Of a stretch of 64,000 bases of DNA, positions 1 to 41,227 are shown in pieces. This DNA comes from Octopus sinensis (lineage: Eukaryota), in the NCBI RefSeq assembly GCF_006345805.1, contig NC_043014.1, positions 46,624,001 to 46,688,000 of the forward strand, read 5' to 3'. Position numbers and translations under genes: made by a program. The notes beneath the pieces are model-generated. The model worked only from the letters and a program-made list of their open reading frames with translations, searched no databases and had not been told where the DNA came from. The first letter of the stretch is position 1. Every line of letters begins with the position of its first letter.

Positions 1-547
1 GCTAATATGGCAGTCCAGAAATATAGGACGGATGCTGCCGTTGATTAGCACCAAGAGGCCATCGCCTCTAGCTAGCTATGTGACATATGAACCTGTGTCC
101 ATTATAACCTTTGAATAGGGGAGGTCAGCCACTTCCCCATGCTGGTCAGGCGTTTGCAGACTAGTTTCAGGGTATTTGCTCCTTATCAATTCAGAGCAGC
201 CAAACCAAGCAGGTGTCGCTACTGACAGTCTGTTCGAAGGATTATTTACCTAAATTCAGTGGAATACATCCACTGGTTTTCAAAAATAGAAATATTAAAA
301 TTTCTAAGTCTCTCTAAAGGAAACTACAGCAGCGGTACTGGATATTAATAGTTATCGCCAAGCTAATATGGCAGTCCAGAAATATAGGACGGATGCTGCT
401 GTTGATTAGCTCCAAGAGACCATCGCTTCTAGCTAGCTATGTGACACACTGACCTGTGTCCATTATAACCTTCAAACAGGGGAGGTCAGCCACTTCCCCT
501 TGCTGGTCAAGCATCTACAGACTAGTTTCAGGGTATTTGCCCCTTAT
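1..547. repeat. 361-bp tandem repeat (about 1.5 copies visible, runs off window start)
   Basis: gctaatatggcagtccagaaatatagg starts at 1 and again at 362; similarity continues to about 547 with scattered substitutions. Confidence 0.9.
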
Positions 548-920
548 GGTGAAAAGGTTGTTTGATATAAACTTCACATTTAAGTATCAATTGATGTTAG
601 AAAAGACATCTGACTTGGAAATATAATTACATCGATAATATAAAAAACAAAAAGAAAAAAAGACAACTAAAGAAGAAACTGAAAGAATTGCAGGAACCTC
701 CAAGTTTTTTTTTTTTGCTTTTTTTTGTTGTCATTGTTTTACTTTTGATGTCTTTCATTTGAAATGTTTTTTGCCTCTTAAATGTGTTATTTATTTGTTG
801 CTGTTGTTGCTTTAGAAAATGTTAAGTTTTAAAAAGTAGTCAACCTTCTGTTCTGTCTAATCCCAACTCATCTACATAACCAGAAGACACATACCGATTC
901 CTCTTGGATACTTAGGTTTA

Positions 921-1102
921 TGGAAGCACTCTGTCGGTTACGACGACGAGGGTTCCGGTTGATCCGAATCAACGGAACAGCCTGCTCGTGAAATTAATGT
1001 GTAAGTGGCTGAGCACTCCACAGACACGTGTACCCTTAACGTAGTTCTCGGGGATATTCAGCGTGACACAGAGAGTGACAAGGCCGGCCCTTTGAAATAC
1101 AG
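921..1102 (-). mobile_element. tRNA-derived SINE (family T), 3' part
   Basis: Reverse complement of the 3' half of the full copy at 38381-38760. Confidence 0.85.
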
Positions 1103-1359
1103 GTTTGAAATACTTAGGTTATGACTTCATAAATCGGATCTTTTTTATAGAAAGTTACTGAAGTTCTCTTGAATTGACTTAACCTATTGTTTTGACATAA
1201 TTTTTCGTTAAAAGTTTAATATGGAGAGGCAGTTGAATTACCTTCTTGCAATTAACTAAGAGCACAGATTGGCCACTATTTCTTCTTGGGATACTTGTTG
1301 ACTTTAGTGGCCAGTAACATTTGATAGAGTGATCTGTGGAGGCACAAGTGTCCTATAAA

Positions 1360-1879
1360 AAATAATAAATGCCCCCTTTTAAAGCCTAACCAGGTTCATG
1401 GGCCCGGTTTCTCAGTTTCTATGGCATATGTGTTCCCCAGCTGAACGGGACGCCAGTCCATCTCAGCGTTACTCATTTTTGCCAGCTGAGTCGACTGGAG
1501 TAATGTGAAATGAAGTGTTTTGCTCAAGAACACAACGCATCGCCCGGTCCAGGAATCGAAACCACAATCTTACGATCATGGTGCTGACACCCAAACCACT
1601 AAACCACGTGTCACCACATAAAATAAATGCGCCCTTTTATAAAGCCTAGCCAGGCTCATGGGCCCGGTTTCCCTGTTTCTATGGCGTATGTGTTCCCCAG
1701 CTGGATGGGACGCCAGTCCATTGCAGCATTACTCATTTTTGCCAGCTGAGTCGACTGGAGTAATGTGAAATGAAGTGTTTTGCTCAAGAATACAATGTGT
1801 CACCTGGTCCAGGAATTGAAACCACAATCTTACAATCATGATGCTGACACCCTAACCACTAAGCCACGCACCTCCACAC
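1360..1879 (-). mobile_element. Two head-to-tail tRNA-derived SINE copies (about 260 bp each)
   Basis: On the minus strand each begins with a tRNA-like head (tggaggtgcgtggcttagtggttagg...ggtttcaattcc) and ends in a shared tail; units at about 1360-1618 and 1620-1879. Confidence 0.8.
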
Positions 1880-1884
1880 AAATG

Positions 1885-2710
1885 TCCTACAGGCATAAGT
1901 AACAGTAATGTTTTGTAAATCCTGCTCGCATGTCCATTAACATCCCAGTAACTTTGGGGTCTCCACGGAGATTCCATGGGTGGACATGCTTTTGGATGAT
2001 CACGGATAATGTATCCATTTATATCTTATGGCTTTACTAGGTGAGCAGTGGGTAGTGAGGGTGCCCAGATTTATATTCCCCAGGGGCAGTAAAACTGCTT
2101 CAAGGTTATTTGTGATGAATCAACAAAGAGATGCCAGTCGGATGCTTCACGAGTCTGAAAATCTGAACCAAATTTGTGAAGCGTTCATTGATGTCATTAC
2201 AATACTGCAAGTGGACCAACTACTGTAAAGTGTGTTGCCAAATTTTGCTTTTGATAGAAACTCCCTTGCGCATATTGATTGCTCAAATGACTTCTGTCTT
2301 GAGCAAGAAACACTTCCTTCCCTTTGGACACTGAGAAGTCTCTGACAGAATCCTTCAAATCCTTCAAATTGTTTTCAGCAATATATTCAGTCTCTAAAGT
2401 AGGCTTAGCACCTTTGTTTTATCGTCACTGGGAGCTAGTTCATCATTTAGAGAAAAGGGACAGGCATTCTTTCATAATGTCAAGTCGGTCTTTTTACTGA
2501 GTATGCGTTTGGATAGACAAAGTTTTGTTTGTTCTTTGCTGGAAACCCAGTTCTGTTAATGCTACAAAAATAGCAGCCAATATGAGAATCCTTCTGCTCT
2601 CTCTTTATCAAAGGCCTTGATCAGCTCTCATTGTTCAATCACTCATGTTGTCTACATGATTAGTTGAACAAAATTTTTACATTCATGAGGCATACGGAAT
2701 AAATGGCAAC
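1885..2710 (-). pseudogene. Degraded DNA-transposon transposase relic (probably Chapaev/CMC-like)
   Basis: Minus-strand fragments NLKDLKDSVRDFSVSKGKE, DWHLFVDSSQITLK and GDPKVTGMLMDMRAGFTKHYCYLCL* match in order the motifs LNDLVRDLxLSK, WRLFIDSSKxSLK and GDLKVxxxLxGxQxGxTKxCCFLCxWDSR of a widespread eukaryotic transposase. Stops and frameshifts present. Superfamily assignment is from memory. Confidence 0.7.
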
Positions 2711-2840
2711 AATCTGAGAAAATATTTTGAAAAATATAAAACATTTCACACATAATTAGAAAAAATATAATTAGTCTCATCACAAAAGCTTTATATGTTA
2801 CTGAGAAACTAGAAGCATTTTACTTTAGAAATCACCATTA

Positions 2841-3054
2841 CCCCTTCGGGATTTATACTGGTCATATTGGGCCCAAATATTCTGCTTGTTTCATTTTCGA
2901 ACTGACCAGATCTGGCCTTTCACATCTACCTTACAATGTCAGTTTAAAAATAATCACATCAAACTTCCACAACTGTAAGATAATCTATGATTAATTCAAA
3001 ACAATGTGAATAAATTAGCATTGCATTTGATGGAGTAATCTGAATGCTAAAGGG
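2841..3054. mobile_element. piggyBac-type MITE (degenerate left end)
   Basis: Ends ...gtaatctgaatgctaaaggg|ttaa; internal similarity to the copies at 6809, 10103 and 20621. Confidence 0.7.
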
Positions 3055-3136
3055 TTAAAAATTCTTTCTGTTCTGCTCCAAATTATCTCTGAAGGAATTA
3101 TTTGGTTAATCAGTACAATTTATAAATGGTATTGAG

Positions 3137-3765
3137 CAGTGATTCTCAACCATTTTTCTCCTGTGGACCTCCTCGATTCCGGTTTCACTTAGATGGATCC
3201 TCAACCATTTGATATTTAAAGAATCTTATTGTATTTTTGTAATTAAATATTATTTAATTTTGCTCAGGTTTGTTTCGACCCTTTAGAATTGGAATTTTTG
3301 GAAAGTAAAAATTTCGCATTATGTAGCTTGTTATTCTCTTTAAGTGAACATTTTTCTGGTTGAAATACACAGAAAAATGGCAACACAGCAGTCAAAAAAT
3401 CGTAAAAAATAGGGATTTTCATAGAAAAAAAAAGCACCTTTTTCATGTAAATAATCTTTGGTGTTAACATTGTCTGATTTGAATTTTTTCTTCTACGGGA
3501 GGAAGAACAAGCCTTCTTCTATCATACTCTCAATTTTGGTCAACTTGCACCACAGGGTCTCGGAGAAGATAGTGTTAGTTGAAGGCTACTAAACCTGCCA
3601 TACACAGACAACTTCAGCTTTTATTGAGATTCTACAAAAAAAAAAAATAGTTGTTAAAATGCTTTGTCTTGTAGAAATAAAACCAATTTATTGCAAATAA
3701 ATTTTAATGATAAACTCTGATATGGACCCCTAAGGGTCATGCGGACCCTGGTTTGAGAACCACGG
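3137..3765. mobile_element. hAT-type MITE with nested Helitron-like element
   Basis: Termini cagtgattctcaa / ttgagaaccacgg; 3262-3635 is the reverse complement of the element at 61209-61597. Confidence 0.7.
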
Positions 3766-5409
3766 GTGTAGAACGTTGCATGTTAGTCAGGGATTCAGTA
3801 CAGTATCACACCACTATATAGATGTGTCTCTACAAATTTTGGCTACTTTTTTCTTTTCTTTTTTTTTCTTTTCCCCCTGTAGCTACAATGATTTCGTTTT
3901 TTGCTGTTCATGTATTCAGTTTTGCCTTTTGTTTATAATTTTTTAGTTGTTCTTATTGTAACATGCCGTCAGTATATTTGAGTTTTTGTTCATTTGATGT
4001 TTTTGTTACATTATTTTTTTTTATTGCCCTGCATGGCATGGAGATGTATAATAAGCAAGGTACTTGTCCGTTTGTTAACGTTTTCTTTTTATCCCTTTCG
4101 GGGGGTGACACTCAACTTCTCACACTCTCACTCCTTATTTTTATCCCCTTTTACAGATAGCCTACCTTTTATTCTTTCATACTCTCCTCTCTCTCTCTCT
4201 CTGTAGCTCACTTCACAAAGCGCTTTGAATATTACAATAAATTTTGGTTAAATATTTCAGAGAATGAGGGTGCATAGTTTGTTAGGCTGTGGTGTATATA
4301 TATATAAATTTTTTGTTTTTAGGTTATTTCATTGCCTCAGGTACTTGACTGGATGACTTACCATAGATGGGTTTCCATTCAATATCGTGCACCATTATCT
4401 GGATTCTGACAGGAGGCTTTTTGATGTTTCCTCTTACTGTCAGCCATCCAGATGATTGGTGCTGAGGCAATGATTTGCGGTTGTCACTAGACATTTCACT
4501 AAAGTACAAGTTCTTGTATTTTTCTCTCATTGCATGCTGGTCTAAATTTGCCTCCTCTCTCTCTCCCTCCTTTCTCCCTCTCTCTCCTCTCTCTCTACTT
4601 CATATTCCTCACACAATTCCACGGTTTTCTCTTTTTCTTTACTCCTTCTCTTTGTCTTTGTTCTCTTCAATTTCTCTCTCCTACATAATAGTGCATGTTA
4701 GTTTAAGCTCGCCTCTCTCTCTCTCTTTCTCTCTCCTGTCCATTGTCAACCACTATATAGTCTGTTGCTGTGGCCAGTTTATCAATTTAGACAGGTAATG
4801 GGGAAATTATGAGCAGCTGATGAAGACAGTATGGGAGTGTGGTTTCAAGTATAAACTGTACAAGGGATTGATTGTATAATTGTGCAGCTATGACACCTGG
4901 TAGCAGAACTAAACCCAATAGGTTGGAGTGTTTGCTTAAGGCCCTACCTTGTTACTACTTACTTTTGATTTAAGGGGTTATTTACTTTATATTGAAATGT
5001 CTGCAATGGGCCAAACATTGATTTACTGCTTTTCTGACAATGAGAACGACAAGGGAGTGTCTGTAACTTGTTACAGAACAAACATCACAAGGGACTTAAT
5101 TTGAAGAGCACTGGTAGGCTGATATTTACATACCTTTTCGTTTCATCCTTTTGGGGCCAAGAGGTAGAGGAAAGAGTCTTGGGTAGCTCTTTGCACTTTG
5201 AACTCAAACCCTGCTTCCGGTTGCAAGAGTTGCTAAGAATGATGATGGTAGACTTGGAAAGTTCTTAAGCAAGTGTTTTAGTATCACTTTCATTAGCGGC
5301 ACATGAGCTGACTGGAGAAAATGCAAGTAGGCTTTGCACTTGAATCATCATCACCATCATCATCATTATCTGTCCATCTTCCATGCTGTCATGGGTTGGA
5401 TGATTTGAC

Positions 5410-5852
5410 TGGAGCTGGCAGAAACGTTAGCATGCCGGGCGAAATGCTTAGCAGTATTTCGTCTGCCGTTATGTTCTAAGTTCAAATTTCGCCGAGGTTG
5501 ACTTTGCCTTTCATCCTTTCGGGGTCGATAAATTAAGTACCAGTTACGCACTGGGGTCGATATAATCGACTTAATCCATGTGTCTGTCCTTGTTTGTCCC
5601 CTCTATGTTTAGCCCCTTGTGGGCAACAAAGAAATAAGAAACATTAGCATGCCAGGCAAAATGCTTAGCGGTATTTCGTCTGTCTTTGTGTTCTGAGTTC
5701 AAATTCCGCTGAGGTCGACTTTACCATTCATCCTTTCGGGATTGATTAAATAAGTACCAGTTATGCACTGGTGATCGATGTCATTGACTTAATCCCTTTA
5801 TCTGTCCTTGTTTGTCCCCTCTATGTTTATCCCCCTGTGGGCAATAAAGAAA
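5410..5852 (+). mobile_element. SINE family M, two tandem copies
   Basis: gagctggcagaaacgttagc...gaggtcgactttgcctttcatcctttcggggtcgataaattaagtaccag...ccccttgtgggcaataaagaaat; the same unit occurs more than 15 times in the window. Confidence 0.9.
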
Positions 5853-6808
5853 TATATTATAGATGCTTCAATTACAGCAGCACATATTCAAGTAAAAAAC
5901 GGTTTTAGCACATTGAAGCATGTTAAACATGGGTCATTCTTCAACATAGAGGACCTGGGGTGATTTCTTTTTAAATAAATACATCTCATATACTATCAAA
6001 TATGGTATTTATACACAGGGTAGGATTCAGTACAGTTTCTACCTATCAGGTTCTAATCAGTTCTGGACTGACTAGTGAAGGAGATACTTGTTCAAGGTGC
6101 TGAATAAACATCTGAATAAACATTGCTGGACAGCAAATAGGGACTCGGACATTACATAGAAGATAGTTTTCATTTTTAGCCTCGTATATAGTACGCACTA
6201 GGGATTTTGACCTTTAAATTATTTTGGGGGAAAATGTGAATTATACTCGAGGATTTACAGTACATCTCAGAATGTCCGAGATCTCTGGCACCCACCATGG
6301 GGGGAATCTCACAGCAGACACTACCTCCCCCCTACACATTCCAGTAGACCACCATTTGTATCCTCCCCGCCAGTTCTTGTCTTGCACTTTTAACAATGTG
6401 CGGCAAGAGAGGTAAAACCCACAACGCATCTTAGAATATCCCTGGTGCCACGACAGTTTACTTCTCCAGCTATTTTTTTTTAACCCCTTCACCACACACA
6501 CACACACTCACACTCACACACGCACACGCACACACACACACACACACCACCTCTGATTCTTTTTCTTAACCCTTTCACCCACCAAATCCCCTTTCTCCTT
6601 CCCGTTGCACTGACTCGACCAATTATTGACGCACACACAGATGGTTCTGGAGAGATTTTCATGGTTCGGAGGTCGACATTGTTTTTTGCTTCTTTTGTTT
6701 GTTTGTTTTGGGTTTTTTATGAAATATTTAATTTTTTTTATATATGAATTTTTTTAATTTTAAATTTTATTTCACCTTTTTTTTTTCTATCTTAATCTTA
6801 CCTTTTAA

Positions 6809-7029
6809 CCCTTTGGTGTTCAGATTACTCTATTAAATGTAATACTTTTTCACTCAAATTGTTTTGAATTAATCATGCATTATGTTATATCTTTGAGGTT
6901 TCAATGAAGTGATTATTTATTTTTTAGAATGTCAATGTAGGTTAGGTGTGAGAGGCTAGATATGGCCAGTTTGAATATAAAACATGTAGAATATTTAGGC
7001 CGGATATGGCCAGTTTAAACACTAAAGGG
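6809..7029. mobile_element. piggyBac-type MITE
   Basis: TTAA|ccctttggtgtt ... aacactaaaggg|TTAA: CCC/GGG terminal inverted repeats with TTAA target duplication. Confidence 0.85.
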
Positions 7030-7111
7030 TTAAATCTGATCAGTTTTGTTTGTTACACACACACAAGGCGAAATTATAAATAAAAATAAAGCAAAGTTTA
7101 TCAAAGTTTAT

Positions 7112-7277
7112 AGGTGCAGGAGTGGCTGTGTGGTAAGTAGCTTGTTTACCAACCACATGGTTCCGGGTTCAGTCCCACTGCATGGCACCTTGGGCAAGTG
7201 TGTTCTACTATAGCCTCGGGCCGACCAAAGCCTTGTGAGTGGATTTGGTAGACGGAAACTGAAAGAAGCCCGTCGTA

Positions 7278-7325
<48 letters not shown>

Positions 7326-7530
7326 TGTGTGTATTTGTGTGTGTCCCCCTAGCATTGCTTGACAACCGATGCTGGTGTGTTTATGTCCCCGTTACTTAGC
7401 GGTTCGGCAAAAGAGACCGATAGAATAAGTACTGGGCTTACAAAAGAATAAGTCCCGGGGTCGAGTTGCCCGATTAAAGGCGGTGCTCCAGCATGGCCAC
7501 AGTCAAATGACTGAAACAAGTAAAAGAGTG
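7112..7530 (+). mobile_element. SINE family C (tRNA-like head, CORE-like ccttgggcaagt box, internal AT/GT microsatellite)
   Basis: gcaggagtggctgtgtggtaag...ggttccgggttcagtccc...aatgactgaaacaagtaaaagag. Other copies at about 9165, 27470(-), 33770, 39040(-), 39760, 40380, 42730, 43350(-) and 58420. Confidence 0.9.
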
Positions 7531-7950
7531 TAAAGCTGTTTTTGCATAAAATGTAACTGAATCATTTCGTGATAATAGCACCAATAGCAATCCTTCATTC
7601 TCATTACAGATTCCTGGGTTTTAGTTCTGCATATCAATATTATTGAACCCCTGTCTGTGTGTGTGTGTGTGTGTGTGTATGTGACCTCTTAGTATTGGTT
7701 TATAGTTTTTTAAATTTAGTTTCCAGTTACACATTTGAAGATGGTGGTGGTGGTGGTGGTGGTGGTGGGGGTGGCGGTAGTAGCGGTGATAGTATTAGTA
7801 GTGCTAGAAATAGTTCTTGTTGATATTATAGTTATTTTTATGCCATTAGTCTTATTCTGTGTGCGTACATGCGCGTGTGTGTGTGCATGCACACGCGTGC
7901 AGTAATGCTTCTATTTTTAGAACAATTTTGTCATCAGAAAGCAAAGTATT

Positions 7951-8027
7951 CTAAGTGCTGACATTGATTTTAAGCAACCTGGTGGCACAGCTCGCAACAT
8001 AGGTTACCAAAAAATAGAATATATATA

Positions 8028-8077
<50 letters not shown>

Positions 8078-8161
8078 CATGTGCAAACATATATAAATAT
8101 ATATATATATACATGTGCAAACATATATATATAAATATGTGTGTATATATATATATGTGTG

Positions 8162-8196
<35 letters not shown>

Positions 8197-8197
8197 G

Positions 8198-8228
<31 letters not shown>

Positions 8229-8261
8229 GAATGTGCAAACATATATATAAATATGTGTATA

Positions 8262-8304
<43 letters not shown>

Positions 8305-8375
8305 GTGCAAACACATATATATATATACATGTGCAAACATATATATATATATATATACATGTATGTATGTATATG
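7951..8375. repeat. (AT)n/(ATAC) compound microsatellite
   Basis: Direct inspection; source of several Y/I/H-rich pseudo-ORFs. Confidence 0.95.
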
Positions 8376-9164
8376 TAGCCCTACCCCGCCACACTTAACT
8401 GGATCTCTTGATCATATAACCTTTGGCATTTATTTAATTTTATCCATCTATTCCTTTACCCACCTTCCAGCAGCAGCATCATCATCACCACCACCACCAC
8501 CACCGCTGCCACCACCACCACCACCACCAATAACTAAACATAAGACAAATCCGTAATGAAAGACAAAATTGTTCAGTCGTACAAATTTATTGATTAATAA
8601 AGAGAAGATGAAAATTATTGTTATTATTACTGTGAAAATGAAAAGTGGTGCGAGGGGGGGGAAGGGAATTCGTTGAGCTTATGGGAACATTAAGAAAAAT
8701 ACCTTGTGGTGTTTGTTCTGGCTTTTTTTGTATGTTCCTAGTTCAAATTCTGCTGTGGTCAAGTACTCCTTTTTTTACCCTTTCAGGGTCGATAATCAAG
8801 TACCATTCAAGTACTGGATCGATTCAAGTCGGCAGTTGCTCCCTCCTGTCGTTATATAAGAACGAAAGGAAATGGAGTGTGTATAGGTGTAGATTTGAAG
8901 AACTTTTGCTCCCTTATCTGGGGTAGCTATCAGGATGTCAGCCTCTAACTTGTTCTCCATTCCAGGAGTCTAGAATGTGGAACGTAATGAACCATTTGAC
9001 CCTTTACTCAGAGATTAAGTTATTTAATTTACATGTGAATTATTTACTTTTACCTAATTTGTGTGTGTGTGCATTCAGTGATGGATCAGTTCTATAGCTT
9101 TGTAGCTCTTAGTGAATTCTCTATGAGATTTGACACACTGATCACTAAAGATTGTGATCAGTGG

Positions 9165-9552
9165 TGTAGGAGTGACTGTGTGGTAAGTAGCTTGCTTACC
9201 AACCACATGGTTCCAAGTTCAGTCCCACTGCGTGACACCTTGGGCAAGTGTGTTCTACTATAGCCTTGGGCCGACCAAAGTCTTGTGAGTGGATTTGGTA
9301 GATGGAAACTGAAAGAAACCTGTCGTATATATGTATATATATATATATGTTTGTGTGTCTGTGTTAGTCCCCCCAACATTGCTTGACAACCGATGCTGGT
9401 GTGTTTACGTCCCCGTAACTTAGCGGTTTGGCAAAAGAGACCAATAGAATAAGTACTAGGCTTATAAAGCATAAGTCCTGGGGTCGATTTGCTTGACTCA
9501 AGGTGGTGCTCCAGTATGGCCACAGTCAAATGACTGAAACAAGTAAAAGAGT
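9165..9552 (+). mobile_element. SINE family C copy
   Basis: Colinear with 7112-7530. Confidence 0.9.
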
Positions 9553-10102
9553 GGAGTCTTATCTTAGACCAATGCTTACAAAATATTTCTGAAAAGACAT
9601 ATAACAAATGACATAGTTATTGAATGTTAAATTAATATTTGTAATTTGAAAATAATTTTACTAATTAACGTTCATGTACTAAATTGTTTCTATGAATATC
9701 ATTTTATGAAATTTATTTACAAAAATTACGGAGATGTACTTACATAGCAAGTGACCTGATCTGAGATCGTGTACTGGAACGAAAACAATTGCAGCGTGGA
9801 AGGTGTTTATTTTGTCAGTGAACAGGTCGCGGTCTCAAAGCGACAAAAATATTTTGGCAAATTAAAATTTAAACACCTTCCACGCTGCAATTATTTACAA
9901 AAATATCTTCATTATTTTGTTAAGAATTGTAGAAAGTATTTCTGTTTTCTTGCATAGCTTGGGGTTTTTGTAGTAAATCTTTGCTCTGTAGATTTAGCCC
10001 CATTTACAATTGGTAAGCAATTTTGTGGGTATGTGGGCCCTCCTTCACCATATGAGCTGATGACTTTGCTGTATTTTTACTGCTTCCACTAGAGTCTCTT
10101 AA

Positions 10103-11161
10103 CCCTTTAGCATTTAAACCCGCCATATGTAACCCAAATATTTTACCTGTTCAAACCAGCCAGATCCAGCCTCTCACACCTACCTTACAATGTCGTTCTA
10201 TAAATAAACAATCACATTGTCAAAATCTTGAAGCAATGAGATAATGCATGATTCATCATCATAACCGTTTAACGTCCACCCTCCATGCTAGCATGTTGTG
10301 GGACGGTTCCACAAGAGCTGGCCAACCCAAAGCCTGCACCAGACTTCTGTGACTGTTCTGGCAGGATTTCTACAGCTGGATGCCCTTCCTAACACAAACT
10401 ACTCAGCAGAGTGGACTTGGTGCTTTTTTCATGATACATGCACAGGCGAGGTGAGAAATACTTTTTACATGGCACTAGCACAGGTGAGATCAGTTTTGGC
10501 AAGGTTTTTACACCTGGATGCCCTTCCTAACACCAACCACTTTACAGAGTGGACTGGGTGCTTTTTTCATGGCACAAACACAGGCAAGGTGAGAAGTGCT
10601 TTTTACATGGCACTAGCACAGGTGAGATCAGTTTTGGCAAGGTTTTTACACCTGGATGCCCTTCCTAACACCAACCACTTTACAGAGTGGACTGGGTGCT
10701 TTTTTCATGGCACAAACACAGGCAAGGTGAGAAGTGCTTTTTACATGGCACAAGCACAGGTGAGATCAGTTTTGGCAAGGTTTTTACACCTGGATGCCCT
10801 TCCTAACACCAACCACTTTACAGAGTGGACTGGGTGCTTTTTTCATGGCACAAACACAGGCAAGGTGAGAAGTGCTTTTTACATGGCACAAGCACAGGTG
10901 AGGTCAGTTTTGGCAAGGTTTTTACACCTGGATGCCCTTCCTAACACCAACCACTTTACAGTGTGGACTGGGTGCTTTTAAGTGGCACCTGCACTGACAG
11001 GGTCACCAAGTACTTGCAAGACAAGAAAAAAAAAACTTTCAAAATAATGTGAATAATAAATAGGAATTCCTCCTCCTCCCCATCATCATCGTTTAACGTC
11101 CGTTTTCCATGCTAGCATGGGTTGGAATTGTATTTGATAAAGTAATCTGAATGCTAAAGGG
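10103..11161. mobile_element. piggyBac-type MITE interrupted by an RTE 3'-tail-derived insertion
   Basis: TTAA|ccctttagcattt at 10103 and atgctaaaggg|ttga at 11161, with an insert of about 850 bp between. Confidence 0.8.
10345..10985. repeat. 138-bp tandem array (about 4.5 copies) derived from an RTE 3' UTR
   Basis: ggtgagatcag at 10483, 10621 and 10759, ggtgaggtcag at 10897. The unit contains ctggatgcccttcctaac, the reverse complement of the tail motif at about 30080-30100. Confidence 0.9.
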
Positions 11162-11546
11162 TTGAGATATATGTGTTAGCCTCGAAAACATTGTTGAAAT
11201 AAAGATTTTTTAAAAAATAAACAAAAGACTTAAGATGTCAAATAGATTTCATACCTATTTTTTAAACTACTAATAAAAGTATTACTTAAACATACCGTGA
11301 AATGGTCCTTTTTCATACCGAATTCTACTTGGTGAAATTATTAATTACTTCTTAATTAATTAATTTTACCCTTTGTTATTGTTTTTTAAACTATTTATCA
11401 TGACTGCATCAAATATTTGTAATGCCTTTTTTTTTACTGAAACTCTTGTTTGATAAATGACTTATCTCTCTTTTTTTTCTTTTTCTTTTTCTTTTCTTTT
11501 TCTCACCTTCTCTCTTCTCTCCGTCGTTGCCGTTCCGGACTTCCAG

Positions 11547-11814
11547 CATCGCAGGCCTCTATGTTTCTTTTATTCTGTTGATTGCACGCTTCCTTCGCAT
11601 GGGAACCATCAACATGCATCCGTCAATAATGTACCGTGAACTGCCGTTTGTTGACCGAATCCTCAAGCTGAGCCTCGACATTTACCTTGTGCGTGAGATG
11701 CATGAGTTCCGTCTGGAAGAAGATCTCTATGCCAAACTCATTTTCCTCTATCGATCACCAGAAACACTCATTAAGTGGACCCGACGTCGAATCGAAAGCA
11801 AAAAGGACAACTAG
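11547..11814 (+). CDS. Piezo: Piezo channel terminal coding exon A (inner helix + intracellular C-terminal domain)
   Basis: Acceptor ttccag|C after a long pyrimidine tract; phase 2, as expected for the G|I junction of Piezo last exons. Translation (G)IAGLYVSFILLIARFLRMGTINMHPSIMYRELPFVDRILKLSLDIYLVREMHEFRLEEDLYAKLIFLYRSPETLIKWTRRRIESKKDN* aligns without gaps to the PIEZO1/2 C-terminus (GLYVS...ELPxVDRILKL..DIxLVRE...LEEELYAKLIFLYRSPETMIKWT). Confidence 0.96.
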
Positions 11815-11847
11815 CTTTATTGATATAACTGCTCTTATTATTATTAC

Positions 11848-11884
<37 letters not shown>

Positions 11885-11916
11885 TATTATTATTATTAGT
11901 AGTAGTATTATTATCG

Positions 11917-12135
11917 AGGCGGTAAGCTGGCTGAATTGTTAGCGTACGGGACAGAGCTGTTTAGCGGCATTTCGTCTGCCGTTACGTCCTGAGTTCAAAT
12001 TCCGCCGAGGTCGACTTTGCCTTTCGATCCTTTCAGGGTTGATGAAATAAGTACCAGGGGGGAGTGCTGGGGGTCGATTTAATCGATTTACCCCAGCCCC
12101 TAAATTTCAGGCCTTGTGCCTAAAGCAGAAAGGAT
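11917..12135 (+). mobile_element. SINE family M copy just downstream of Piezo exon A stop
   Basis: gaggcggtaagctggctgaattgttagc...ggtcgactttgcctttc...aaatttcaggccttgtg. Confidence 0.85.
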
Positions 12136-12183
12136 TATTACTATTATTATCATTATTATCTATTATTATTATTATTATCATTA

Positions 12184-12221
<38 letters not shown>

Positions 12222-12489
12222 TATCTCAAGCTTTTGCTTGATTGTGCTTTCTATCTAATCAACCCCTCTTTCTGAGTAATTTGCTTTATATCTGTTTGAT
12301 ATTTATATCATTGCTCTACAGTTGTATGTGCATTATTTATTACATATCTCTGCATAATACAGGATTTTTTAATTTTTTATTTTCATAACCCACAAATATA
12401 TTTTGCTTAAAATGTTCCCCAACTTCTTAATAAAAAAAATATTGTTTACCAATGATGTCCGCAGACCTACTTTCACACATTTCTATAGA

Positions 12490-12520
<31 letters not shown>

Positions 12521-13263
12521 CATGCACACCTGTGTACACCTATGTATCTACACTAATTGCAAACATACACACTCACCTACTGGAATAATCTAATGAGTCT
12601 CTGGAGACACACAAAAGATTATCTAACGACATTTTCTGATATTTTAAAAGATAACGAATTGTAAGGATACAAACAGTACACTGATTAATACACACGCGCA
12701 CACACGCACACACACACACACACACACACCCACACACGCACACACACACACACACACATGTATTCATGTACGTTTTTTTGCAAATATCTGTACGTATTTA
12801 TGGTTTTAAATGTATTAGTAAATCTATGTGTGTGAAGGGGGAGTATGCACGCACACACATGCATGTGCACACAGACAGACAGACACATGCATTACATTCA
12901 TGTGGAAACCTTGTTTCACTTTCACTTTCTCAAAACTGTTACAACGAACAAAAAAGATCCCACAAAAACAAAATCGGAAAAATGAACACCAATACCTCCC
13001 CCAACACCTCCACTTTGTATTTATTTGCTGTTTCTAATTTATATTTCAGTATTATCTGTAGCACAAGTATTAATGGCATTATTAGTATTACTACATGTAG
13101 TAGTAGTAGCAGTAGTAATTGTTGTAAAAAAGTGTTTTGAATTTCTAACGAAAATACGAAAATGGCTCAGGATTTTCATAACAACTTAATTGATTTCCTG
13201 CCCTCAACCTTTGCTCCTCTACCAATACTATCTTACTGGAAAACTGTCTAGTACATTGTTTAC

Positions 13264-13299
<36 letters not shown>

Positions 13300-13854
13300 C
13301 TTTCCATCAAAGAAACCATATTGGTATTACTAATATGGATCTGGCAGAGTGATTAACTTTTCTTCTTTTTTCCCGTTTTTTTATTTTTGGTGGTACGGGG
13401 TGGTGGTACGGGGTGGTGGTGCCTATGATTCATGTAGAGCCTTCACTCCCAGGTTGGTGACTGTAGTGGATGTCCAACCTCAACATCTGCGGGAATGTTT
13501 ACTTGTTCCGTGTTCAAACCCCACAAAATGACAACTTTTGTCTTTCATCCTGCTACGGTCGACCAGCTGTACCCCTTTCTTATAAATTTGTGGCCTTCTG
13601 CCAATCTTAGAAATCATTATTATTATTAAGGTGAAGAACTGGCAGAATCGTTAGCATGCTGGGCAAAATGCTTAGCTGCACTTAATCTGTCCTCACGTTC
13701 TGAGTTCAAATTCCACCGAGGTCGACTTTGCCTTTCATTCTTTCGGGGTTGATAAATTAAGAACCAGTGGAGTACTGGGATCGATGTCATCGACTTAACC
13801 CCTCCCCTAAATTTCAGGCCTTTGTGCCTATAATAGAAAGGATTATTATTATTA

Positions 13855-13895
<41 letters not shown>

Positions 13896-13904
13896 TTCCT
13901 TCTT

Positions 13905-13962
13905 TCTTCAAATTTTCTTCCGTTTCTCATCGAGTGTTTTCCGTACACCTAGGGCAGAGAAG

Positions 13963-13965
<3 letters not shown>
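13905..13965 (-). mobile_element. Very short 5'-truncated R4/Dong 3'-end remnant inside an (ATT)n array
   Basis: gagtgttttccgtacacctagggca resembles the reverse complement of the 3' UTR end at about 52380-52410; (ATT)n lies on both sides. Confidence 0.55.
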
Positions 13966-14015
<50 letters not shown>

Positions 14016-15486
14016 AGAGTTCTCATTTCCAAAAGTTTTGTGTCACAAGTAAATATGAGATATACATATCCAGTAGATAACTCTATTTCTGCCTTTCCTA
14101 TAATTGTAACAATTCAGTTTTATGTGAATTTTCAGGGCAGTGGACTGGCAAAATTTTTTAAGCATCCAGCAAAAAATTCCTTACACTATTTATTCCAGCT
14201 CTTTTACATTCTGAGTTCAGCTCATTTTTACCTTTTTTTTTTTACCTTCTGGGATTGCTGTGAGGCAGGGGTGGTGTCTATAAAATTAACCACCAGTTTA
14301 AGTAATGAAGTTGATATGATTGACTGACTGCTTTCTTTCTCTCTCTCTCTCTCTCTTCAAAATTTCTGCTCCCTGTGCCTATGTTAGAAGTGACTACCTT
14401 TAATTACTGCAGTCAGTATGGCCAGTAAATTGTGTTACCTGCAGTTTCCTCTTGATGGCCCTGAGCTCCCATCATTACTCAGCATTGTAAATAGAAAATT
14501 TATGGTTCAGTTTTCTCCGTAAAAGATGAATATACAATTTGAAAACAAAAAGTTTGTGATCAAAACACATTTTTATTTTTGTCTGTTTTTTTTTATAAAC
14601 CTTTTTCATTTAAACGTGTATTTAAAAAAGAAAAAAAAACAAAACAACAACAACACAAAAAACCCCCAAAAAACAAATACATGTTCCTCAGTATTTGCCG
14701 TTTGTTTCTGTCTGTTTATGTAGCTGTATTACTGAATTACTAACCAGAAAAAACTATATTTAGTGTTCTATGTTTTTGTACTTTCTATCATGTGAACCTT
14801 AAATTCTAAATCTGTGTTTTTATATTGAAACCGTTTCCGAATGTGACAGTGTGTCTTATTATCAGTGTTCAATTGAGTACGTCGTCGTTCATTCTGTTTA
14901 CAAAAAGCATTACATGGCAGTCTAAGTTTTCCACGCAACCCCGTATCACAATCCAAAAGTTGATGTCGTAACGTGACACCTTTTTCTGACAACACTTCAG
15001 GAGATACTGGAATGTCTCTTATTTCAATCTGATCTCTGATTATATTTAGGTAAATCAGTTTATTCCAATACCATCCAAAATACTTGTGTCTATCACATGA
15101 ACTTCCTGACCTTCTCAATCAGTTGCTGTGCTTCTAGTACTATTATTTCATACTAACTTTATTATTATTATAAGAATCAAGCTGACGGAATTATTATTGC
15201 ACCAAACAAAATGATTTGTGTGATTTCTTTGGGTGTTTTATATCACGAGTCAAACACAACCATGATTGAGCTGGCAGAATTGTTAGAAATGTTTAATGGC
15301 ATTTCGTCTGTTCTTGCAGTCTGAGTTCAAATTCCACCAAGGTCTACTTTGCCTTTCATCCTTCTGGGGTCAATATAATAACTACTAGTTTGAGAACTGG
15401 GGTCGATGTAATCAACTTACCCCACTGCTTCTCAAACCTGCTGGCCTTGTGCTAAAATGTGAAACCATTATTATTATTGTAATTAC

Positions 15487-15517
<31 letters not shown>

Positions 15518-15822
15518 GATATCGCACAGTATCGTAAGGTTGTTGATTGGCATGTTTCTGTTGATCAGATCGGCTGGAACCCTTGTCATCATAACCAATG
15601 GAATGCCAGTTTAGTACTGCAAAGACACATATATCAGTGGTTTGCTAGATTCTTTATATTGTCCAATGTTTTCTAAAACAGAATACACTCAAAATGATCA
15701 TCTTTTGATAAACACATGTCTTTCCAATATTTGTTTTGATTGGCTGTTGTTGTTTGTTGTAATAATTTTCAGAATATGGTATGTATTTTCTATTCTAATT
15801 TGGCTGTTGTATTTTAAGTAGT

Positions 15823-15841
15823 TTGTATATGTATATATATA

Positions 15842-15888
<47 letters not shown>

Positions 15889-16274
15889 TACATATACATA
15901 TATATATATATACACATATATACATACATATACATATATATATATACATACACATATATATATACATACACATATATACATACATATACATATATATACA
16001 TACATATACATATATATACATACATATACATATATATACATACATATACATATATATACATACATATACATATATATACATATATATATATATATACATA
16101 CATATACATATATATATACACACATATATATATATACATATATATATACACATATATATATATATACACATATATACATATATATACACATATATATTTA
16201 TGTTTATATATATATGTGTGTGTGTGTGTATATATATATGTGTGTATATATATATATATGTGTGTATGTATATA

Positions 16275-16345
<71 letters not shown>
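15823..16345. repeat. (AT)n/(ATAC)n/(GT)n microsatellite
   Basis: Direct inspection. Confidence 0.95.
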
Positions 16346-17178
16346 CTTAATGAAAGCTTTTGTATATTTGTGTTGTTAGTTAATTCCAGCAGTCAGTTGT
16401 ATAAGGAAAGTCCCTGTTGTGGAAATATCTGAGGTGGTGGCCAGCAGAGGTAGAAGTGTGCACCAGTGTGTATCAATTACAGTCACTTCTTTTGACTAAA
16501 CCATCCAATGGCAGTGTGCCAGCATGGGTCGCAGTCCAATGACCGAAGCAATTAAAATGTGGAAGACACATAGAAATTCACAGAATGGGGGGTGATTGCC
16601 ATAACATAAGCACACGGCAAATTACACAAGCTTATAATCTAATTTTTATTATCAGTTGCAACCATTTACATCTCTGACACTTTGCTATGAGTCTGCTAAT
16701 CTCCCAGTAGTGTTTTTCTAAAAAAAAAAACAGAAAAAAACCCCTGAATTTTATTGGTGTTAACATTCCTTTACTGCTGATTGTTTCCAATGAATGGTTT
16801 TTTCTTTTGTTTTTTAAACATTTATTTCTAATTTTATGGGCTTATCCTGTCTTTTCCTGGTTGTATCGTTGTGTTGTTGTTGTTGTTGTTCCTTCTCTGT
16901 ATTCCCTGATATTCATCACCAATTGTTGTTGTTGTTGGATCGAAAAAAAAAACAAAACAAACAACGACAACAACAAAAACCAGATTAAAAGAAAATAATG
17001 AAAGGAAATTATGGATTACTATAAAAACAGTTTTTACATTTTTTTAAAAAAAGAAAATTTTTATTTTGCTTTAAACTTGCCCTACCAACTTACACACACA
17101 CTCACTCACTCACTCACACACACACACACACACACTCACACACACTCACACATACACACACACACACACACACTCTCA

Positions 17179-17225
<47 letters not shown>

Positions 17226-17512
17226 TCACACACACCAGTCCTAATGTGCAGCACGTGCGTCTACAGCCTCACATTTCATCTTGGCAGCCAGTCATATCAA
17301 TAATAATAATAATAATAATAATAATGATAATAATAATAATAATAATCATGCAGAGGACCCTACTTTCTTACTCCCAAAGCCCTTATATCTGTTCAGTCCC
17401 AAACTATTACTACCAAGAGGTGTTAACAATTGACGATGAGAAGATAACGGAAGTTAGATATTGGCCAGTCTTGTACCTCTTGGTAAACTGTGACATTTCT
17501 GGCATCTTTGTG

Positions 17513-17557
<45 letters not shown>

Positions 17558-17561
<4 letters not shown>

Positions 17562-17591
17562 CTGTGATCAAAAGCAAATGCCTAAACAACA

Positions 17592-17645
<54 letters not shown>

Positions 17646-17880
17646 GGTTCAGCAAAAAAATTGCTTTACCAAATGTGGTAAAGCAAATTTTTTTTGTTGA
17701 ACCCTAATTATATAAAGTAATGTTTAAGTTCACTGTAAATGGTCCTTTTAACATACTGAACACTGCTTGGTAAAATTATTAATTAATTAATTAATTTTAC
17801 CCTTTATTATTATATATATATATATATATTATATATATATATAGCCTAGTGTTTAAGCATTTGCCTTTGATCACAGACAA
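17558..17880. mobile_element. Foldback MITE-like element with about 40-bp TIRs and an internal hairpin
   Basis: ttgtctgtgatcaaaagcaaatgcctaaac (17558) is the inverted repeat of gtttaagcatttgcctttgatcacagacaa (to 17880); inner arms at 17641-17671 and 17676-17709. Confidence 0.8.
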
Positions 17881-18827
17881 ATGATCTATCTTCTGTTCAT
17901 ATGTTTAGATTCCATCAGTATTGAGGTGTTTAATTCTGTGTGTGCGTGTGTGTGTGTAAAAAAGTGTGACTGGAATCTATCTTATTTCCTCCTCTTAATT
18001 TCCTTAATTCTTATCCCACGTTTTTCACTCCTCCTTCTATTTGCTAATCTCACCCTTCAATACTATTACTACTACTATTTCTTGCATGAGTTCTTGCCCT
18101 ATACTTGGGTGGAAAGCGGGGGTGGAGTGGGTCGGGGTGTCTTTCCCTGCATTTGTTTTTTTTTTCTCTTTATATTTTCTTCAGCTAAAATATTAAGGTA
18201 CTTCACCCCCAAGTACCCGTTTACTTTATAACAGTTTTCTCTCTGTCTCACACTTTGGAAATGATTGGAGTAATTCCTGAACAGGTATTTAAAAGAAGAA
18301 GAAACAAAAAAAATGAAATGAAATGAAATATTTGCCTTTAAATGTTTGGATGTATGGGGAACATTTTATGGGTTAACAAGAAATATTTTCTGTGTTTTTT
18401 TTTTTGTTTTTTGTTGTCTACATGATTATTGTATTTTTTTTTTTCCTGAAATTATTTTTTTAAATATTTTTTTCTAAATGTCCAAATGGGGAAATGGCTC
18501 ACCATGACATTCTACAACAAAACATGTTTGTATCCAGTGGCAGATGTTTGTATTCTAATTCTTGGACAACGCATCAAAATTTCCTCATTTAACTATATTC
18601 TATTTAACAGAGTTTAATTATGACAGGCTAACACTCTCTCTTTTCTTCAGTTTAACCCACTAGAAACTACATTCTGTTCCCTTTTTTTTTTTCCATGTTA
18701 AAATACACAAGTCTTTAATGACTTATCCAAGAGGAAGTAGAGACTCTAAAACTGGTACTAAGCATTACAAATCTTGTACTGAACGTAAAGAAAAGTTTAG
18801 CTTCAATGTTAACATTTTAGCCTTTTA

Positions 18828-18968
18828 TAAGGTTGTCCCAAAAGTTCGTAAACACTTGCGAAAATTGAATTTTTACTCACCAAGTACTAACAAAAACAAC
18901 AAAAATTATTCCTCAAAATAAAGACCATTATTTTCCAAGACTTTCTACGAACTTTTGGGACAACCTTA
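18828..18968. mobile_element. Tc1/mariner-type MITE
   Basis: TA|taaggttgtcccaaaagttcgta ... tacgaacttttgggacaacctta|TA; TIR resembles that of the mariner at 46658. Confidence 0.85.
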
Positions 18969-19467
18969 TATTTATTTGTTCAGCTTCCTGAGAGAGGAGT
19001 TGATCTTGGTGTCTAACCACTTCAGAACTCAGATCTCGGAGTTGTTCTCTCTTCTTTCATAGCCGTGTTCCTACCAGCTAAGTGAGGTACGGGACAATTT
19101 ATTTAGTATCTTACCAAATTACTGCTGCTTTTGATGCAATACAAACTCAAATTCTGCAACCAACTGACTGGCATTTTATTCCCTTGGCCATTGGGACTTG
19201 TTTTTTTCTTTTCACAATTAATATTCAATATTTTTGATTTTTTTTTTTTTTGATTGATTCTAGTTTCAGCTTATGAGCTGTGGCCATGCTGGGGCACCGC
19301 CTTTTGTTTAATTTTGTTTAATTTTTTTTTTTTTCGTTTTGTTTTTCAATTTTTATATGCTTGAAATTTGTTTTTAGTTTTTCTTATGCTTGTGTGTGTT
19401 TGTGTGTGTGTTTTCTTTTTGCATTCAGGCAATGTTCTTGTCAACCGTAATCTCATCTCTGTTTCAG

Positions 19468-19720
19468 CATAATTGGCCTGTATGTGTCAATGGTGTTTGT
19501 AATCGGACGCTTTGCTCGTATGTTTGTCAGTGAAGTTTCCTTCCGTATCATGTTTATGGAGCTGCCCCGTGTTGACAACATCTTAAAACTCTGCTTGGAC
19601 ATCTACCTTGTTCGCGAATGCTCTGATTTAGGTCTCGAAGAGGAACTGTTTGCTAAGCTTATATTTTTGTACCGCTCACCAGAAACCATGATCCGATGGA
19701 CTAAACCAAAATATGACTGA
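19468..19720 (+). CDS. Piezo: Piezo channel terminal coding exon B (second inner helix + C-terminal domain)
   Basis: Acceptor ctctgtttcag|C with branch-like ccgtaat; same phase 2 as exon A. Translation (G)IIGLYVSMVFVIGRFARMFVSEVSFRIMFMELPRVDNILKLCLDIYLVRECSDLGLEEELFAKLIFLYRSPETMIRWTKPKYD*. Intact and carries the Piezo signature AKLIFLYRSPET. Confidence 0.96.
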
Positions 19721-19829
19721 AATATCCTCCCACAACATCCTTTCACTGCTCTCTCTCTACTCAAGAGGTCTCTCTACACTATTTTGTTTTACGAGATAAA
19801 TGTATATACTCTGTATTTATTTCACGAAA

Positions 19830-20461
19830 TATATGTATATAATATATACTTATACATACCCTCAAACTCCATACACTGTAAAAGTTATGTAAAAATTCTG
19901 AAAATTGTAAGGTTGTATACTTTGATATTAAGAAGATGCAGGTTCAATTTCAGACCCATTCTCTTAACATTTTTTTTTTCTGTTTGTTTTAAACATACAC
20001 ACTCTCACTGTGTGTGTGTGCGTGTGTGTACACAAACATACATACATACATACATGGATTGATTGATTGATAGATAGATAAATAGATGATTAATTCAATA
20101 ATTGTTATATTTAAATTAGCTATTTCTGAACTAAAATATATGTATATAATATATACTTATACATACCTTCAAACTCCATACACTGAAAAAGTTATGTAAA
20201 AATTCTGAAAATTGTAAGGTTGTATACTTTGATATTAAGAAGATGCAGGTTCAATTTCAGACTCATTCTCTTAACATTTTTTTTTCTATTTATTAGTGAT
20301 TTATATGTTTTAAACATACACACTCTCACACTGTGTGTGTGTGTGTACACAAACAGACAGACATAGATACATACATACATACATGGATTGATTGATTGAT
20401 AGATAAATAGATGATTAATTCAATAATTGTTATATTTAAATTAGCTATTTCTAAACTAAAA
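19830..20461. repeat. About 307-bp tandem duplication downstream of Piezo exon B
   Basis: tatatgtatataatatatacttatacatacc at 19830 and 20137; copies colinear to ...ttagctatttct(g/a)aactaaaa. Confidence 0.9.
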
Positions 20462-20620
20462 GGGAAGAATAAGAAGTGTGTTTCTACTTTGATGTAGCTG
20501 TTGTGGTTTAAGTACTGGTCAATGTGGATCAAGTAGAACTATAAACAAAGGCATTCCAGTTGCGTGACCATCCTCCCTCTGACTTAGTATATCCAAGATT
20601 ACTCTAATTAAATATATTAA

Positions 20621-20839
20621 CCCTTTAGTGTTCAGATTATTCTATCAAACATAATGCTTATTGATTCCCATTGATTTGAATTAATTATGCATTGTCTCAT
20701 ATCTTCAAGATCTTGATGTTGTAATTACTTAATGTAGAATAACATTGTAGGGTAGGTGTGAGAGCCTGGATCTGGTCAGTTTGAACATAAAACAGATTAA
20801 ATATTTTGGCCGGATATGACCGGTTTAAATACTAAAGGG
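20621..20839. mobile_element. piggyBac-type MITE
   Basis: TTAA|ccctttagtgttcagatta ... aatactaaaggg|TTAA. Confidence 0.85.
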
Positions 20840-21024
20840 TTAAATATATTCTTCCTTTGATTTAGGAAGGGAGACTGTGAATCGAGGAAAGAAATTGGCT
20901 TCTATTTCTAGAGACTGCAGCATGTATGTAGTTGGTGCTTGACCCTTAAATGTAATGTTGCAGATACAGATTATCCCTTAAGCATTATATCTGTATTTAT
21001 AAAATGATAAATAAAAGGGACAAG

Positions 21025-40371: not shown

Positions 40372-40604
40372 ATGTTTGTGTATATGTTTGTGTGTCTGTG
40401 TTTGTCCTCCGCCCCCACCATCGCTTGACAACTGATGCTGGTGTGTTTACGTCCCCGTAACTTAACGGTTCGACAAAAAGAGACCGATAGAATAAGTACT
40501 AGGCTTACAAAGAACAAGTCCTGGGGTCGATTTGCTCGACTAAAGGCGGTGCTCCAGCATGACCGCAGTCAAATGATTGAAACAAGTAGAAGAGTAAAAG
40601 AGAT

Positions 40605-41209
40605 GCCGACAGGATTTTCCAGATGTATATCACCGCATATCTCTCCCGCCTCCGCTCTAGGGAGAAGAGGTTTAATACTTTCAGTCTTTCCCAGTAGCTG
40701 ATATTTTGCATTGAGACGATCTTCTTTGTGTAGCTTCTCTGAATTGCTTCGAGTTCTGCGGTTAGTTTTATATTGTGTGGTGACCACAGTTGTGAGCAGT
40801 AGTCCAAGCGGCTGAGGACGAACGTTTTCCAGAGGACCATCAGTGTCTCCTTTTCTCTTGTTCTGAAAGTTCGGAGAATCCATCCAGCTAGCCGTCTGCA
40901 TTTTATCACCAGATTAGTAATATGCACTTGGAAAGATGCATCATTGCTCATGTCAATGCCCAGGTCACGCACTGATTTTGACTCAGGGATTGCAATTCTT
41001 CCTGGGCCAGTGTATCCAGTCTGCACGTCGTTTACCTTTGTGTGCCGGTAGCGCAGGGCCTGGAACTTACCTGCATTAAACTGTATGTTGTTGTCCTCAG
41101 CCCACTTGTATATTGTATCCAACTCCTGTTGCAGATGCGCAATATTTTCAGGGTTTTGTATTGTGTGGGAGACTTTTGTGTCATCTGCATAGCTAGCAAG
41201 GGTGGCCAT
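40605..41209 (-). mobile_element. CR1/Jockey-group LINE reverse transcriptase fragment, truncated at both ends
   Basis: About 200 aa open: LASYADDTK, FNAGKFQAL, VRDLGIDMS, RLDYCSQLWSP, LEAIQRSYTK, YWERLKVLNLFSLERRRER. Confidence 0.92.
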
Positions 41210-41227
41210 CGTAGCAATATATATATA

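Follow-up and report, generated by a model that had tools for sequence, protein, structure and literature searches.

How can one channel gene come to possess two ends? The question is raised by a stretch of 64,000 nucleotides from Octopus sinensis (contig NC_043014.1, positions 46,624,001 to 46,688,000 of the forward strand; the whole stretch is called the window here), in which two intact exons, termed A and B, each encode the C-terminal end of the mechanosensitive channel Piezo. An earlier inspection of the letters, here the sequence-only reading, had proposed that one Piezo gene chooses between both by alternative last-exon splicing. In this study, we explored the anatomy, use and evolutionary age of the two exons by comparison with proteins, transcripts and genomes of other animals. 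Taken as a whole, the observations are very probably best explained by a single large Piezo gene of O. sinensis with two alternative last exons, which stem from an ancient tandem duplication in molluscs and exchange one end of the pore for another.

Two terminal exons behind one splice donor

The coding part of exon A (11547..11814, + strand), read directly from the sequence and identical to the end of XP_029647893.1, consists of one nucleotide completing a Gly codon, followed by 88 codons and the stop TAG at 11812-11814. The coding part of exon B (19468..19720, + strand), likewise read directly and identical to the end of XP_036366872.1, consists of one nucleotide completing the same Gly codon, 83 codons and the stop TGA at 19718-19720. 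The acceptor AG of exon A is located at 11545-11546 behind a long pyrimidine tract (about 11466-11544), that of exon B at 19466-19467, also with a pyrimidine tract before it, and both are followed by a C (11547 and 19468, respectively) which constitutes the third base of GGC and places both exons in phase 2. From the end of exon A to the start of exon B we count 7,653 nt. The coordinates of two intact same-strand exons 7.65 kb apart, in phase 2 and with stops of their own, could hence be reproduced as the sequence-only reading had given them.

The two peptides align without gaps at 49 of 81 positions (BLASTP, E = 2e-33), in line with the gapless alignment and the 49 identities counted before. 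They have AKLIFLYRSPET in common, a motif that had been described as invariant in spite of differing DNA, and indeed the two exons use different codons for 32 of the 49 shared residues (first 80 codons compared). DNA identity amounts to only 59%, and synonymous sites are saturated, with a proportion of synonymous differences (pS) of 0.84 and of nonsynonymous differences (pN) of 0.28.

We searched the 20 kb upstream of the window for the preceding Piezo exons. The penultimate exon shared by both forms resides on the scaffold of the window (C18) at C18:46619451-46619658, corresponding to window -4549..-4342, and ends in ...GGCTATGG|gtatgt with the codons ATT ACT GGC TAT GG|gtatgt. That the upstream exon would end in ...GG|gt had been predicted, and the intact donor at C18:46619658 bears this out. 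One donor thus faces two acceptors, at a distance of 15.9 kb (A) and 23.8 kb (B); counted from this donor (window -4342), the last intron measures 15,888 nt in the A isoform and, spanning exon A, 23,809 nt in the B isoform. Further upstream, Piezo exons for residues 2106-2360 map in order and on the same strand to C18:46608699-46619658. Using the full-length O. sinensis protein as tblastn query, we detected no Piezo exon in the window besides A and B, in agreement with the earlier description of the A-B interval as repeats devoid of Piezo exons.

The gene divides the window as follows. Positions 1..11546 (+) make up the 3' portion of the intron preceding exon A and show no Piezo-coding match; its acceptor was read directly. 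The interval 11815..19467 (+), which would be skipped for the use of exon B and includes the acceptor AG of B, holds repeats and no Piezo exon. A putative 3' untranslated region (UTR) of the A isoform extends over 11815..12434 (+) to the first AATAAA at 12429-12434, and that of the B isoform is predicted at 19721..21015 (+), where ATTAAA at 20607 and 20796 and AATAAA at 21010 are candidate poly(A) signals; both regions were delimited by a hexamer scan, and use of these sites is presumed.

A partial second copy of the penultimate exon was observed in the last intron at C18:46622172-46622317 (window about -1828..-1683; L006), 2.5 kb downstream of the real exon. Its 146 nt are 94% identical and cover ...GRVDWWYVTE...FSLI, with neither the 5' part of the exon nor the GG|gt donor, and are flanked by short direct repeats AGCAACTCATTG. 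It has the appearance of a fragment that was recently duplicated, or captured by a transposon, and is decaying.

Segment of the channel encoded by the two exons

Both peptides are readily recognised as the last 80 residues of Piezo. They match positions 219-298 of the Pfam family PF12166 (Piezo_cap) with 120.6 bits and E = 1e-34 for exon A and 140.1 bits and E = 1e-40 for exon B, at a curated cut-off of 26.9 bits. Residues 1-81 of exon A align colinearly and without gaps to residues 2466-2546 of mouse Piezo1 and to residues 2740-2820 of Piezo2 in solved structures (E about 1e-26), and the colinearity of exon B with the same Piezo end (mouse Piezo1 2466-2546) follows from a MAFFT alignment of 50 ends. 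R2482, E2496 and the LP and YRSPET motifs are present in both.

Each exon had been described before as encoding the pore inner helix together with the C-terminal domain (CTD). The assignment of the CTD stands; that of the helix has to be narrowed. Both exons begin at the equivalent of mouse I2466, and with the inner-helix boundaries which we take to apply in Piezo, this start lies within the helix, so that both exons are predicted to carry only its C-terminal, cytoplasmic part, followed by the CTD.

Probable use of both ends by a single gene

In RefSeq, O. sinensis isoform X1 (XP_036366872.1, 2,443 residues) ends in ...FSLITGYG|exon B and isoform X2 (XP_029647893.1, 2,421 residues) in ...FSLITGYG|exon A, and both full models are placed on the 55.35-Mb scaffold that carries the window. 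The A/B isoforms are therefore already public as automated RefSeq predictions and are not new to databases. For O. bimaculoides, A- and B-ending isoforms are also both listed, some of them already in the first genome annotation of this species: XP_052831049.1, XP_014782010.1 and the UniProt entry A0A0L8GDH1 end in B, and the other isoforms in A. Compared with O. sinensis, exon B of this species differs at one residue and exon A at two.

A direct view of both ends on mRNA comes from a cuttlefish, in which two transcript contigs assembled from public runs each hold an uninterrupted Piezo open reading frame of ~7.1 kb. One of them (L008, from SRR8281668, 8,244 nt) has the A end and the other (L007, from SRR8281690, 8,635 nt) the B end. 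Over 7.8 kb, as far as ...GGATATGG, their identity amounts to 99.9%, and they split exactly at the GG| junction, continuing with C ATC GTC GGT ... in the A-type and with T ATA ATT GGC ... in the B-type, and their 3' UTRs are unrelated. The encoded protein is about 98% identical to Piezo of Acanthosepion pharaonis over the aligned part. Junction-spanning transcript fragments among our search returns came from other species and none from octopus, and the octopus protein clusters contained no transcript-assembly member.

Between octopus and cuttlefish, pN and pS amount to 0.067 and 0.75 for exon A and to 0.092 and 0.62 for exon B. Since pN lies far below pS in each case, neither exon behaves as a relic, and both ends have been under strong purifying selection since these lineages separated. 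The per-exon comparison (pN 0.07-0.09 against pS 0.62-0.75) thereby agrees with the long purifying selection that had been suspected from third codon positions.

These values bear on the possibility that one of the exons is a dead relic (pseudo-exon) of a partial tandem duplication and that the isoforms using it are prediction artefacts. Automated annotation may build any open exon with homology into an isoform, and the O. vulgaris model CAI9737891.1, in which part of A, the residues 'PKIL' and the whole of B follow one another, is clearly odd. A relic would, on the other hand, not stay open for so long: besides the low pN, the two reading frames are open and their acceptors intact, each exon is almost unchanged between O. 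sinensis and O. bimaculoides, both ends occur on assembled cuttlefish mRNAs, and the pair has been retained in gastropods and bivalves. We therefore regard a pseudo-exon as very improbable.

The same cuttlefish mRNAs speak to the idea that exon B belongs to a second Piezo gene, or that the region is misassembled or represents a collapsed haplotype. In its favour, the unplaced contig C13496 of the O. sinensis assembly bears a third match to the Piezo C-terminus, and two Piezo-family genes have been reported in O. vulgaris (PMC12919962). Paralogues, however, would not share 7.8 kb upstream of the junction at 99.9% identity, and at 59% DNA identity exons A and B are far too divergent to be haplotypes. 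In addition, no other Piezo exon is found in the window between A and B or after B, the copy on C13496 is a different sequence (31-48% identical), and fused models of O. vulgaris and of Mya arenaria place A sequence before B within single gene models. A paralogue or an assembly error is hence hardly credible, and the earlier argument that exon B is not the end of a second full gene is upheld by the lack of further Piezo exons in the window together with the 7.8 kb shared by the cuttlefish mRNAs. With RefSeq X1 and X2, the O. bimaculoides isoforms, the cuttlefish mRNAs and purifying selection all in agreement, the proposal of one octopus Piezo gene choosing between two alternative last exons, A or B, is supported.

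Mutually exclusive internal exons were considered as a different mode of splicing and rejected, because both alternatives carry stops, no Piezo exon follows in the window and the cuttlefish 3' UTRs are unrelated.

We propose a model in which the shared donor would either join exon A at window 11547, with cleavage and polyadenylation soon after, or skip it and reach exon B at window 19468, 7.9 kb further. Use of the proximal exon would need the A acceptor together with a nearby cleavage site, the first AATAAA being located at 12429. Either choice would complete the same Gly codon and supply its own stop and 3' UTR. The swap would exchange the equivalent of mouse residues 2466-2547, i.e. the cytoplasmic end of the inner helix and the CTD, and the expected outcome would be two channel subunits with identical blades, anchor and cap and with different pore ends.

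Several further observations concern the gene models and the third match. Isoforms X1 (P0135) and X2 (P0121) of O. sinensis differ additionally at ...ERQ(IIERKSLLAFQV/VVPPNASDK)GLVETG, at TTMAS(CSSASVVWSFFPKTRS)YLDV and at QKR(NVLAVLEAR/K)FVSV, and these three segments therefore suggest several other alternative-splicing events upstream of the window. The O. vulgaris model (P0002) comprises the first 48 residues of exon A (to ...DIYLV), 'PKIL' and all of exon B, which puts two inner-helix ends in tandem; no sequence encoding the 'PKIL' linker was found in the O. sinensis window, and GTGCGT inside exon A (...CTT|GTGCGT) could serve as a cryptic donor. The model may be an annotation artefact or derive from an aberrant transcript. 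The third Piezo C-terminal match (L003, C13496:116207-119443, with the match at 117707-117943 on the - strand) belongs to a Piezo-like sequence in which about 1.7 kb, without long introns, encodes the C-terminal ~550 residues, although these are split among the three reading frames. We read it either as a frameshifted retrocopy or as a compact paralogue whose introns are very short.

Age and spread of the exon pair in molluscs

To place the two ends among other animals, homologues were searched with a query padded to full Piezo length, and only the exon region was scored. Exon B is 72-73% identical to the ends of vertebrate, echinoderm and annelid Piezos and 60% identical to exon A, and exon A is closest to ends from gastropods and bivalves (72-74%).

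Whether other molluscs hold a conserved tandem pair was a check proposed together with the sequence-only reading, and A- and B-ending isoforms of one gene were found in abalone, oysters and mussels. In Haliotis asinina, isoform X2 ends in B and the others in A, and in H. rufescens, isoforms X2 and X8 end in A and the others in B. Among oysters, the B end is present on isoform X6 of Crassostrea virginica and on isoform X3 of Ostrea edulis, all other isoforms having the A end, and an oyster-type Logan transcript fragment (P0327) spans the junction into the B end. The zebra mussel Dreissena polymorpha and the freshwater mussel Sinanodonta woodiana possess isoforms of both kinds. An A end was found in Patella vulgata and a B end in P. 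caerulea. In the Mya arenaria model, an A end is followed by a B end, and the order of A before B outside octopus is taken from this fused gene model. On a decapodiform genomic contig with the B exon (L009), no A exon was detected within 10 kb upstream.

In a maximum-likelihood tree of 50 ends over 82 columns, 18 of 18 mollusc A ends, from cephalopods, gastropods and bivalves, group together in one clade (98/97 support), which recurs in 100% of 200 bootstrap trees. The B ends lie among the canonical bilaterian ends. Since all mollusc A ends form one clade, the duplication of the terminal exon is placed before the split of cephalopods, gastropods and bivalves. The divergence of these classes dates to the Cambrian or earlier. 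B accordingly represents the ancestral, canonical bilaterian form and A the derived, mollusc-specific copy, which makes the A/B pair, as judged from these comparisons, an ancient mollusc feature common to cephalopods, snails and bivalves and not a novelty of octopus or of cephalopods. In our model, the terminal exon would have been duplicated in tandem before the three classes diverged, with both copies kept by purifying selection since then.

Models with two tandem Piezo terminal segments were also noted in the biting midge Culicoides sonorensis (P0139) and in the bdelloid rotifer Adineta steineri (P0140). As each pair clusters with itself in the tree, these duplications are independent and lineage-specific, and the pore end of Piezo may have been duplicated repeatedly in the course of evolution.

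Residue differences and possible function

Residues that separate the two types were counted by column in the alignment mentioned above, with 18 A ends, 11 B ends and 17 outgroup ends and with mouse Piezo1 numbering. F2473, I2474, L2476, T2485 and M2516 are fixed or nearly fixed in A ends, occur in none of the 11 B ends and in at most one of the 17 outgroup ends. The A ends thereby invariably have a leucine in place of V2476, the gate valine of mouse Piezo1. They also display a rebuilt linker at 2483-2491 (L-S-T-T-G as opposed to F-F-S-G), a variable residue at the position of M2493, and R, L, Q or K, never an acidic residue, at position 2495. Common to A and B are R2482, E2496 and the YRSPET motif, which contains the P2536/E2537 constriction.

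In mouse Piezo1, the hydrophobic inactivation gate is made up of L2475 and V2476, the voltage dependence of inactivation is set by K2479 and R2482, and the M2493/F2494 constriction contributes to inactivation (PMC10531961; PMC6349400). Selectivity for cations is determined by E2487 and E2495/E2496 in the lining of the intracellular fenestrations (PMC7815867). Because the A-specific residues are situated in or beside sites that alter inactivation or selectivity of mouse Piezo1, channels with A and B ends likely differ in inactivation and/or in conductance, permeation and selectivity, on the same force-sensing body.

One further explanation accepts that both exons are used and locates the consequence in the mRNA, where the 3' UTR would affect localisation, stability or translation in sensory endings and the two protein ends would be equivalent. 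Alternative last exons often exert their effect by way of the 3' UTR, the two cuttlefish mRNAs have unrelated 3' UTRs, and most gating residues are alike in A and B (L2475, R at 2479, R2482, E2496 and P2536/E2537). However, the A clade is strongly supported, and the conservation of type-specific residues across the phylum, fixed or nearly fixed in 18 A ends and absent from 11 B ends, weakens this explanation, since it points to selection on two protein sequences. An effect confined to the mRNA is thus unlikely.

With two distinct protein ends preferred, we lean slightly towards the view that, since before the split of cephalopods, gastropods and bivalves, one mollusc gene has given rise to two Piezo channels of distinct biophysical behaviour by a swap of the pore end, possibly in a cell-type-specific manner in octopus suckers, statocysts and muscle receptors. 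If true, this would constitute a phylum-wide natural pore-swap experiment, in which force sensing by identical blades is set apart from gating and permeation, and a one-gene counterpart of the division of labour between vertebrate Piezo1 and Piezo2.

A number of points weigh against the splicing, the ancestry or the function proposed here. Evidence for usage in O. sinensis itself consists of the NCBI model pair and conservation, and polyadenylation after exon A would depend on one AATAAA. The tree, which is built from few columns, does not group the B ends into a clade of their own. For Littorina and Physella, all listed isoforms have the A end, so that the B end may be dispensable there or simply unannotated. 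As to function, both types retain L2475, K/R2479 and R2482, the replacement of Val by Leu at the gate is conservative, and the difference between the channels is extrapolated from mutagenesis in mouse.

Relation to known systems

Alternative splicing of one Piezo gene is known to tune mechanosensitivity, Ca2+ permeability and inactivation in vertebrates, where the variants comprise Piezo1.1, which lacks exon 30, and Piezo2 forms differing in exons 18, 19, 33, 35 and 40, and where homo- and heteromeric channels of Piezo isoforms have been proposed (PMC12490864). These variants concern cassette exons for the intracellular lateral plug and blade loops, whereas in molluscs a whole terminal exon would be exchanged together with the 3' end. 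C. elegans pezo-1 likewise yields many isoforms from a single invertebrate Piezo gene, of which the solved isoforms G, K and L differ in the extent of the N-terminal blade (PMC12951647), in contrast to mollusc isoforms, which share their blades and differ in the pore end. Two Piezo pore ends with different kinetics in one animal are also a feature of the vertebrate pair Piezo1 and Piezo2, although for molluscs the kinetics are extrapolated; vertebrates possess two whole Piezo genes, molluscs a duplicate of the last exon only, and the mechanosensing body is therefore identical in both mollusc forms.

Alternative exons for pore segments that change ion selectivity are known from the snail T-type calcium channel LCav3 (exons 12a/12b) and from pore variants of TRPM3. 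The LCav3 case likewise comes from a mollusc and involves a duplicated pore-segment exon that is chosen alternatively, as in mollusc Piezo. Those events are internal, mutually exclusive or of the alternative-site kind, and affect four-domain or tetrameric channels, whereas in mollusc Piezo they concern last exons of a trimeric channel.

Octopus studies have used Piezo as a marker or candidate gene and do not distinguish its ends (PMC12036646, PMC12919962). In open-access papers and bioRxiv preprints we found no description of alternative pore-end or last exons in any Piezo. The nature of the isoforms as a swap of paralogous pore modules, and its antiquity across Mollusca, thus appear to be unreported.

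Gating and inactivation of Piezo are usually probed by point mutants and Piezo1/Piezo2 chimeras. Here, nature offers two versions of the segment with the hydrophobic gate, the MF constriction and the acidic residues of the lateral portals on an otherwise identical channel, and a comparison of A- and B-ended channels could reveal on which of these residues the speed of inactivation, the conductance and the permeability to Ca2+ depend. Probes specific to one exon or the other could tell whether types of mechanoreceptor (sucker epithelium, proprioceptors, statocyst) differ in the pore end that they use. The A/B pair also explains the fused models with two tandem pore ends in Mya and O. vulgaris.

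Other sequences in the window

Between exons A and B lie (ATT)n, (CA)n and (TA/TACA)n arrays together with three copies of an element resembling a short interspersed element (SINE), with nothing coding. The SINE-like copies, each ~100 nt long and equipped with an (ATT)n tail, are located at 11955-12057, 13666-13768 and 15287-15389 and are 67-100% identical to the reference copy; a palindromic (TA/TACA)n array of 600 nt occupies 15750-16380.

Listing of open frames of at least 130 codons, six of which were scanned against Pfam, led to no other recognisable host gene in the window. Downstream of the Piezo gene, frames at 40505-41302 (-), 51072-52277 (+) and 55197-55673 (-) show weak, sub-threshold Pfam matches to RVT_1/zf-RVT, and are best read as decayed fragments of non-long-terminal-repeat retroelements. 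In the intron upstream of exon A, an open frame of 229 codons (10292-10981, +) consists of about five tandem units of ~38 residues (FLHLDALPNTNHFTEWTGCFFHGTNTGKVRSAFYMA.AQVRSVLAR), and Pfam returned only sub-threshold noise for it. A related motif recurs at 32974-33456 (-), and the frame is probably a satellite or a SINE-derived repeat.

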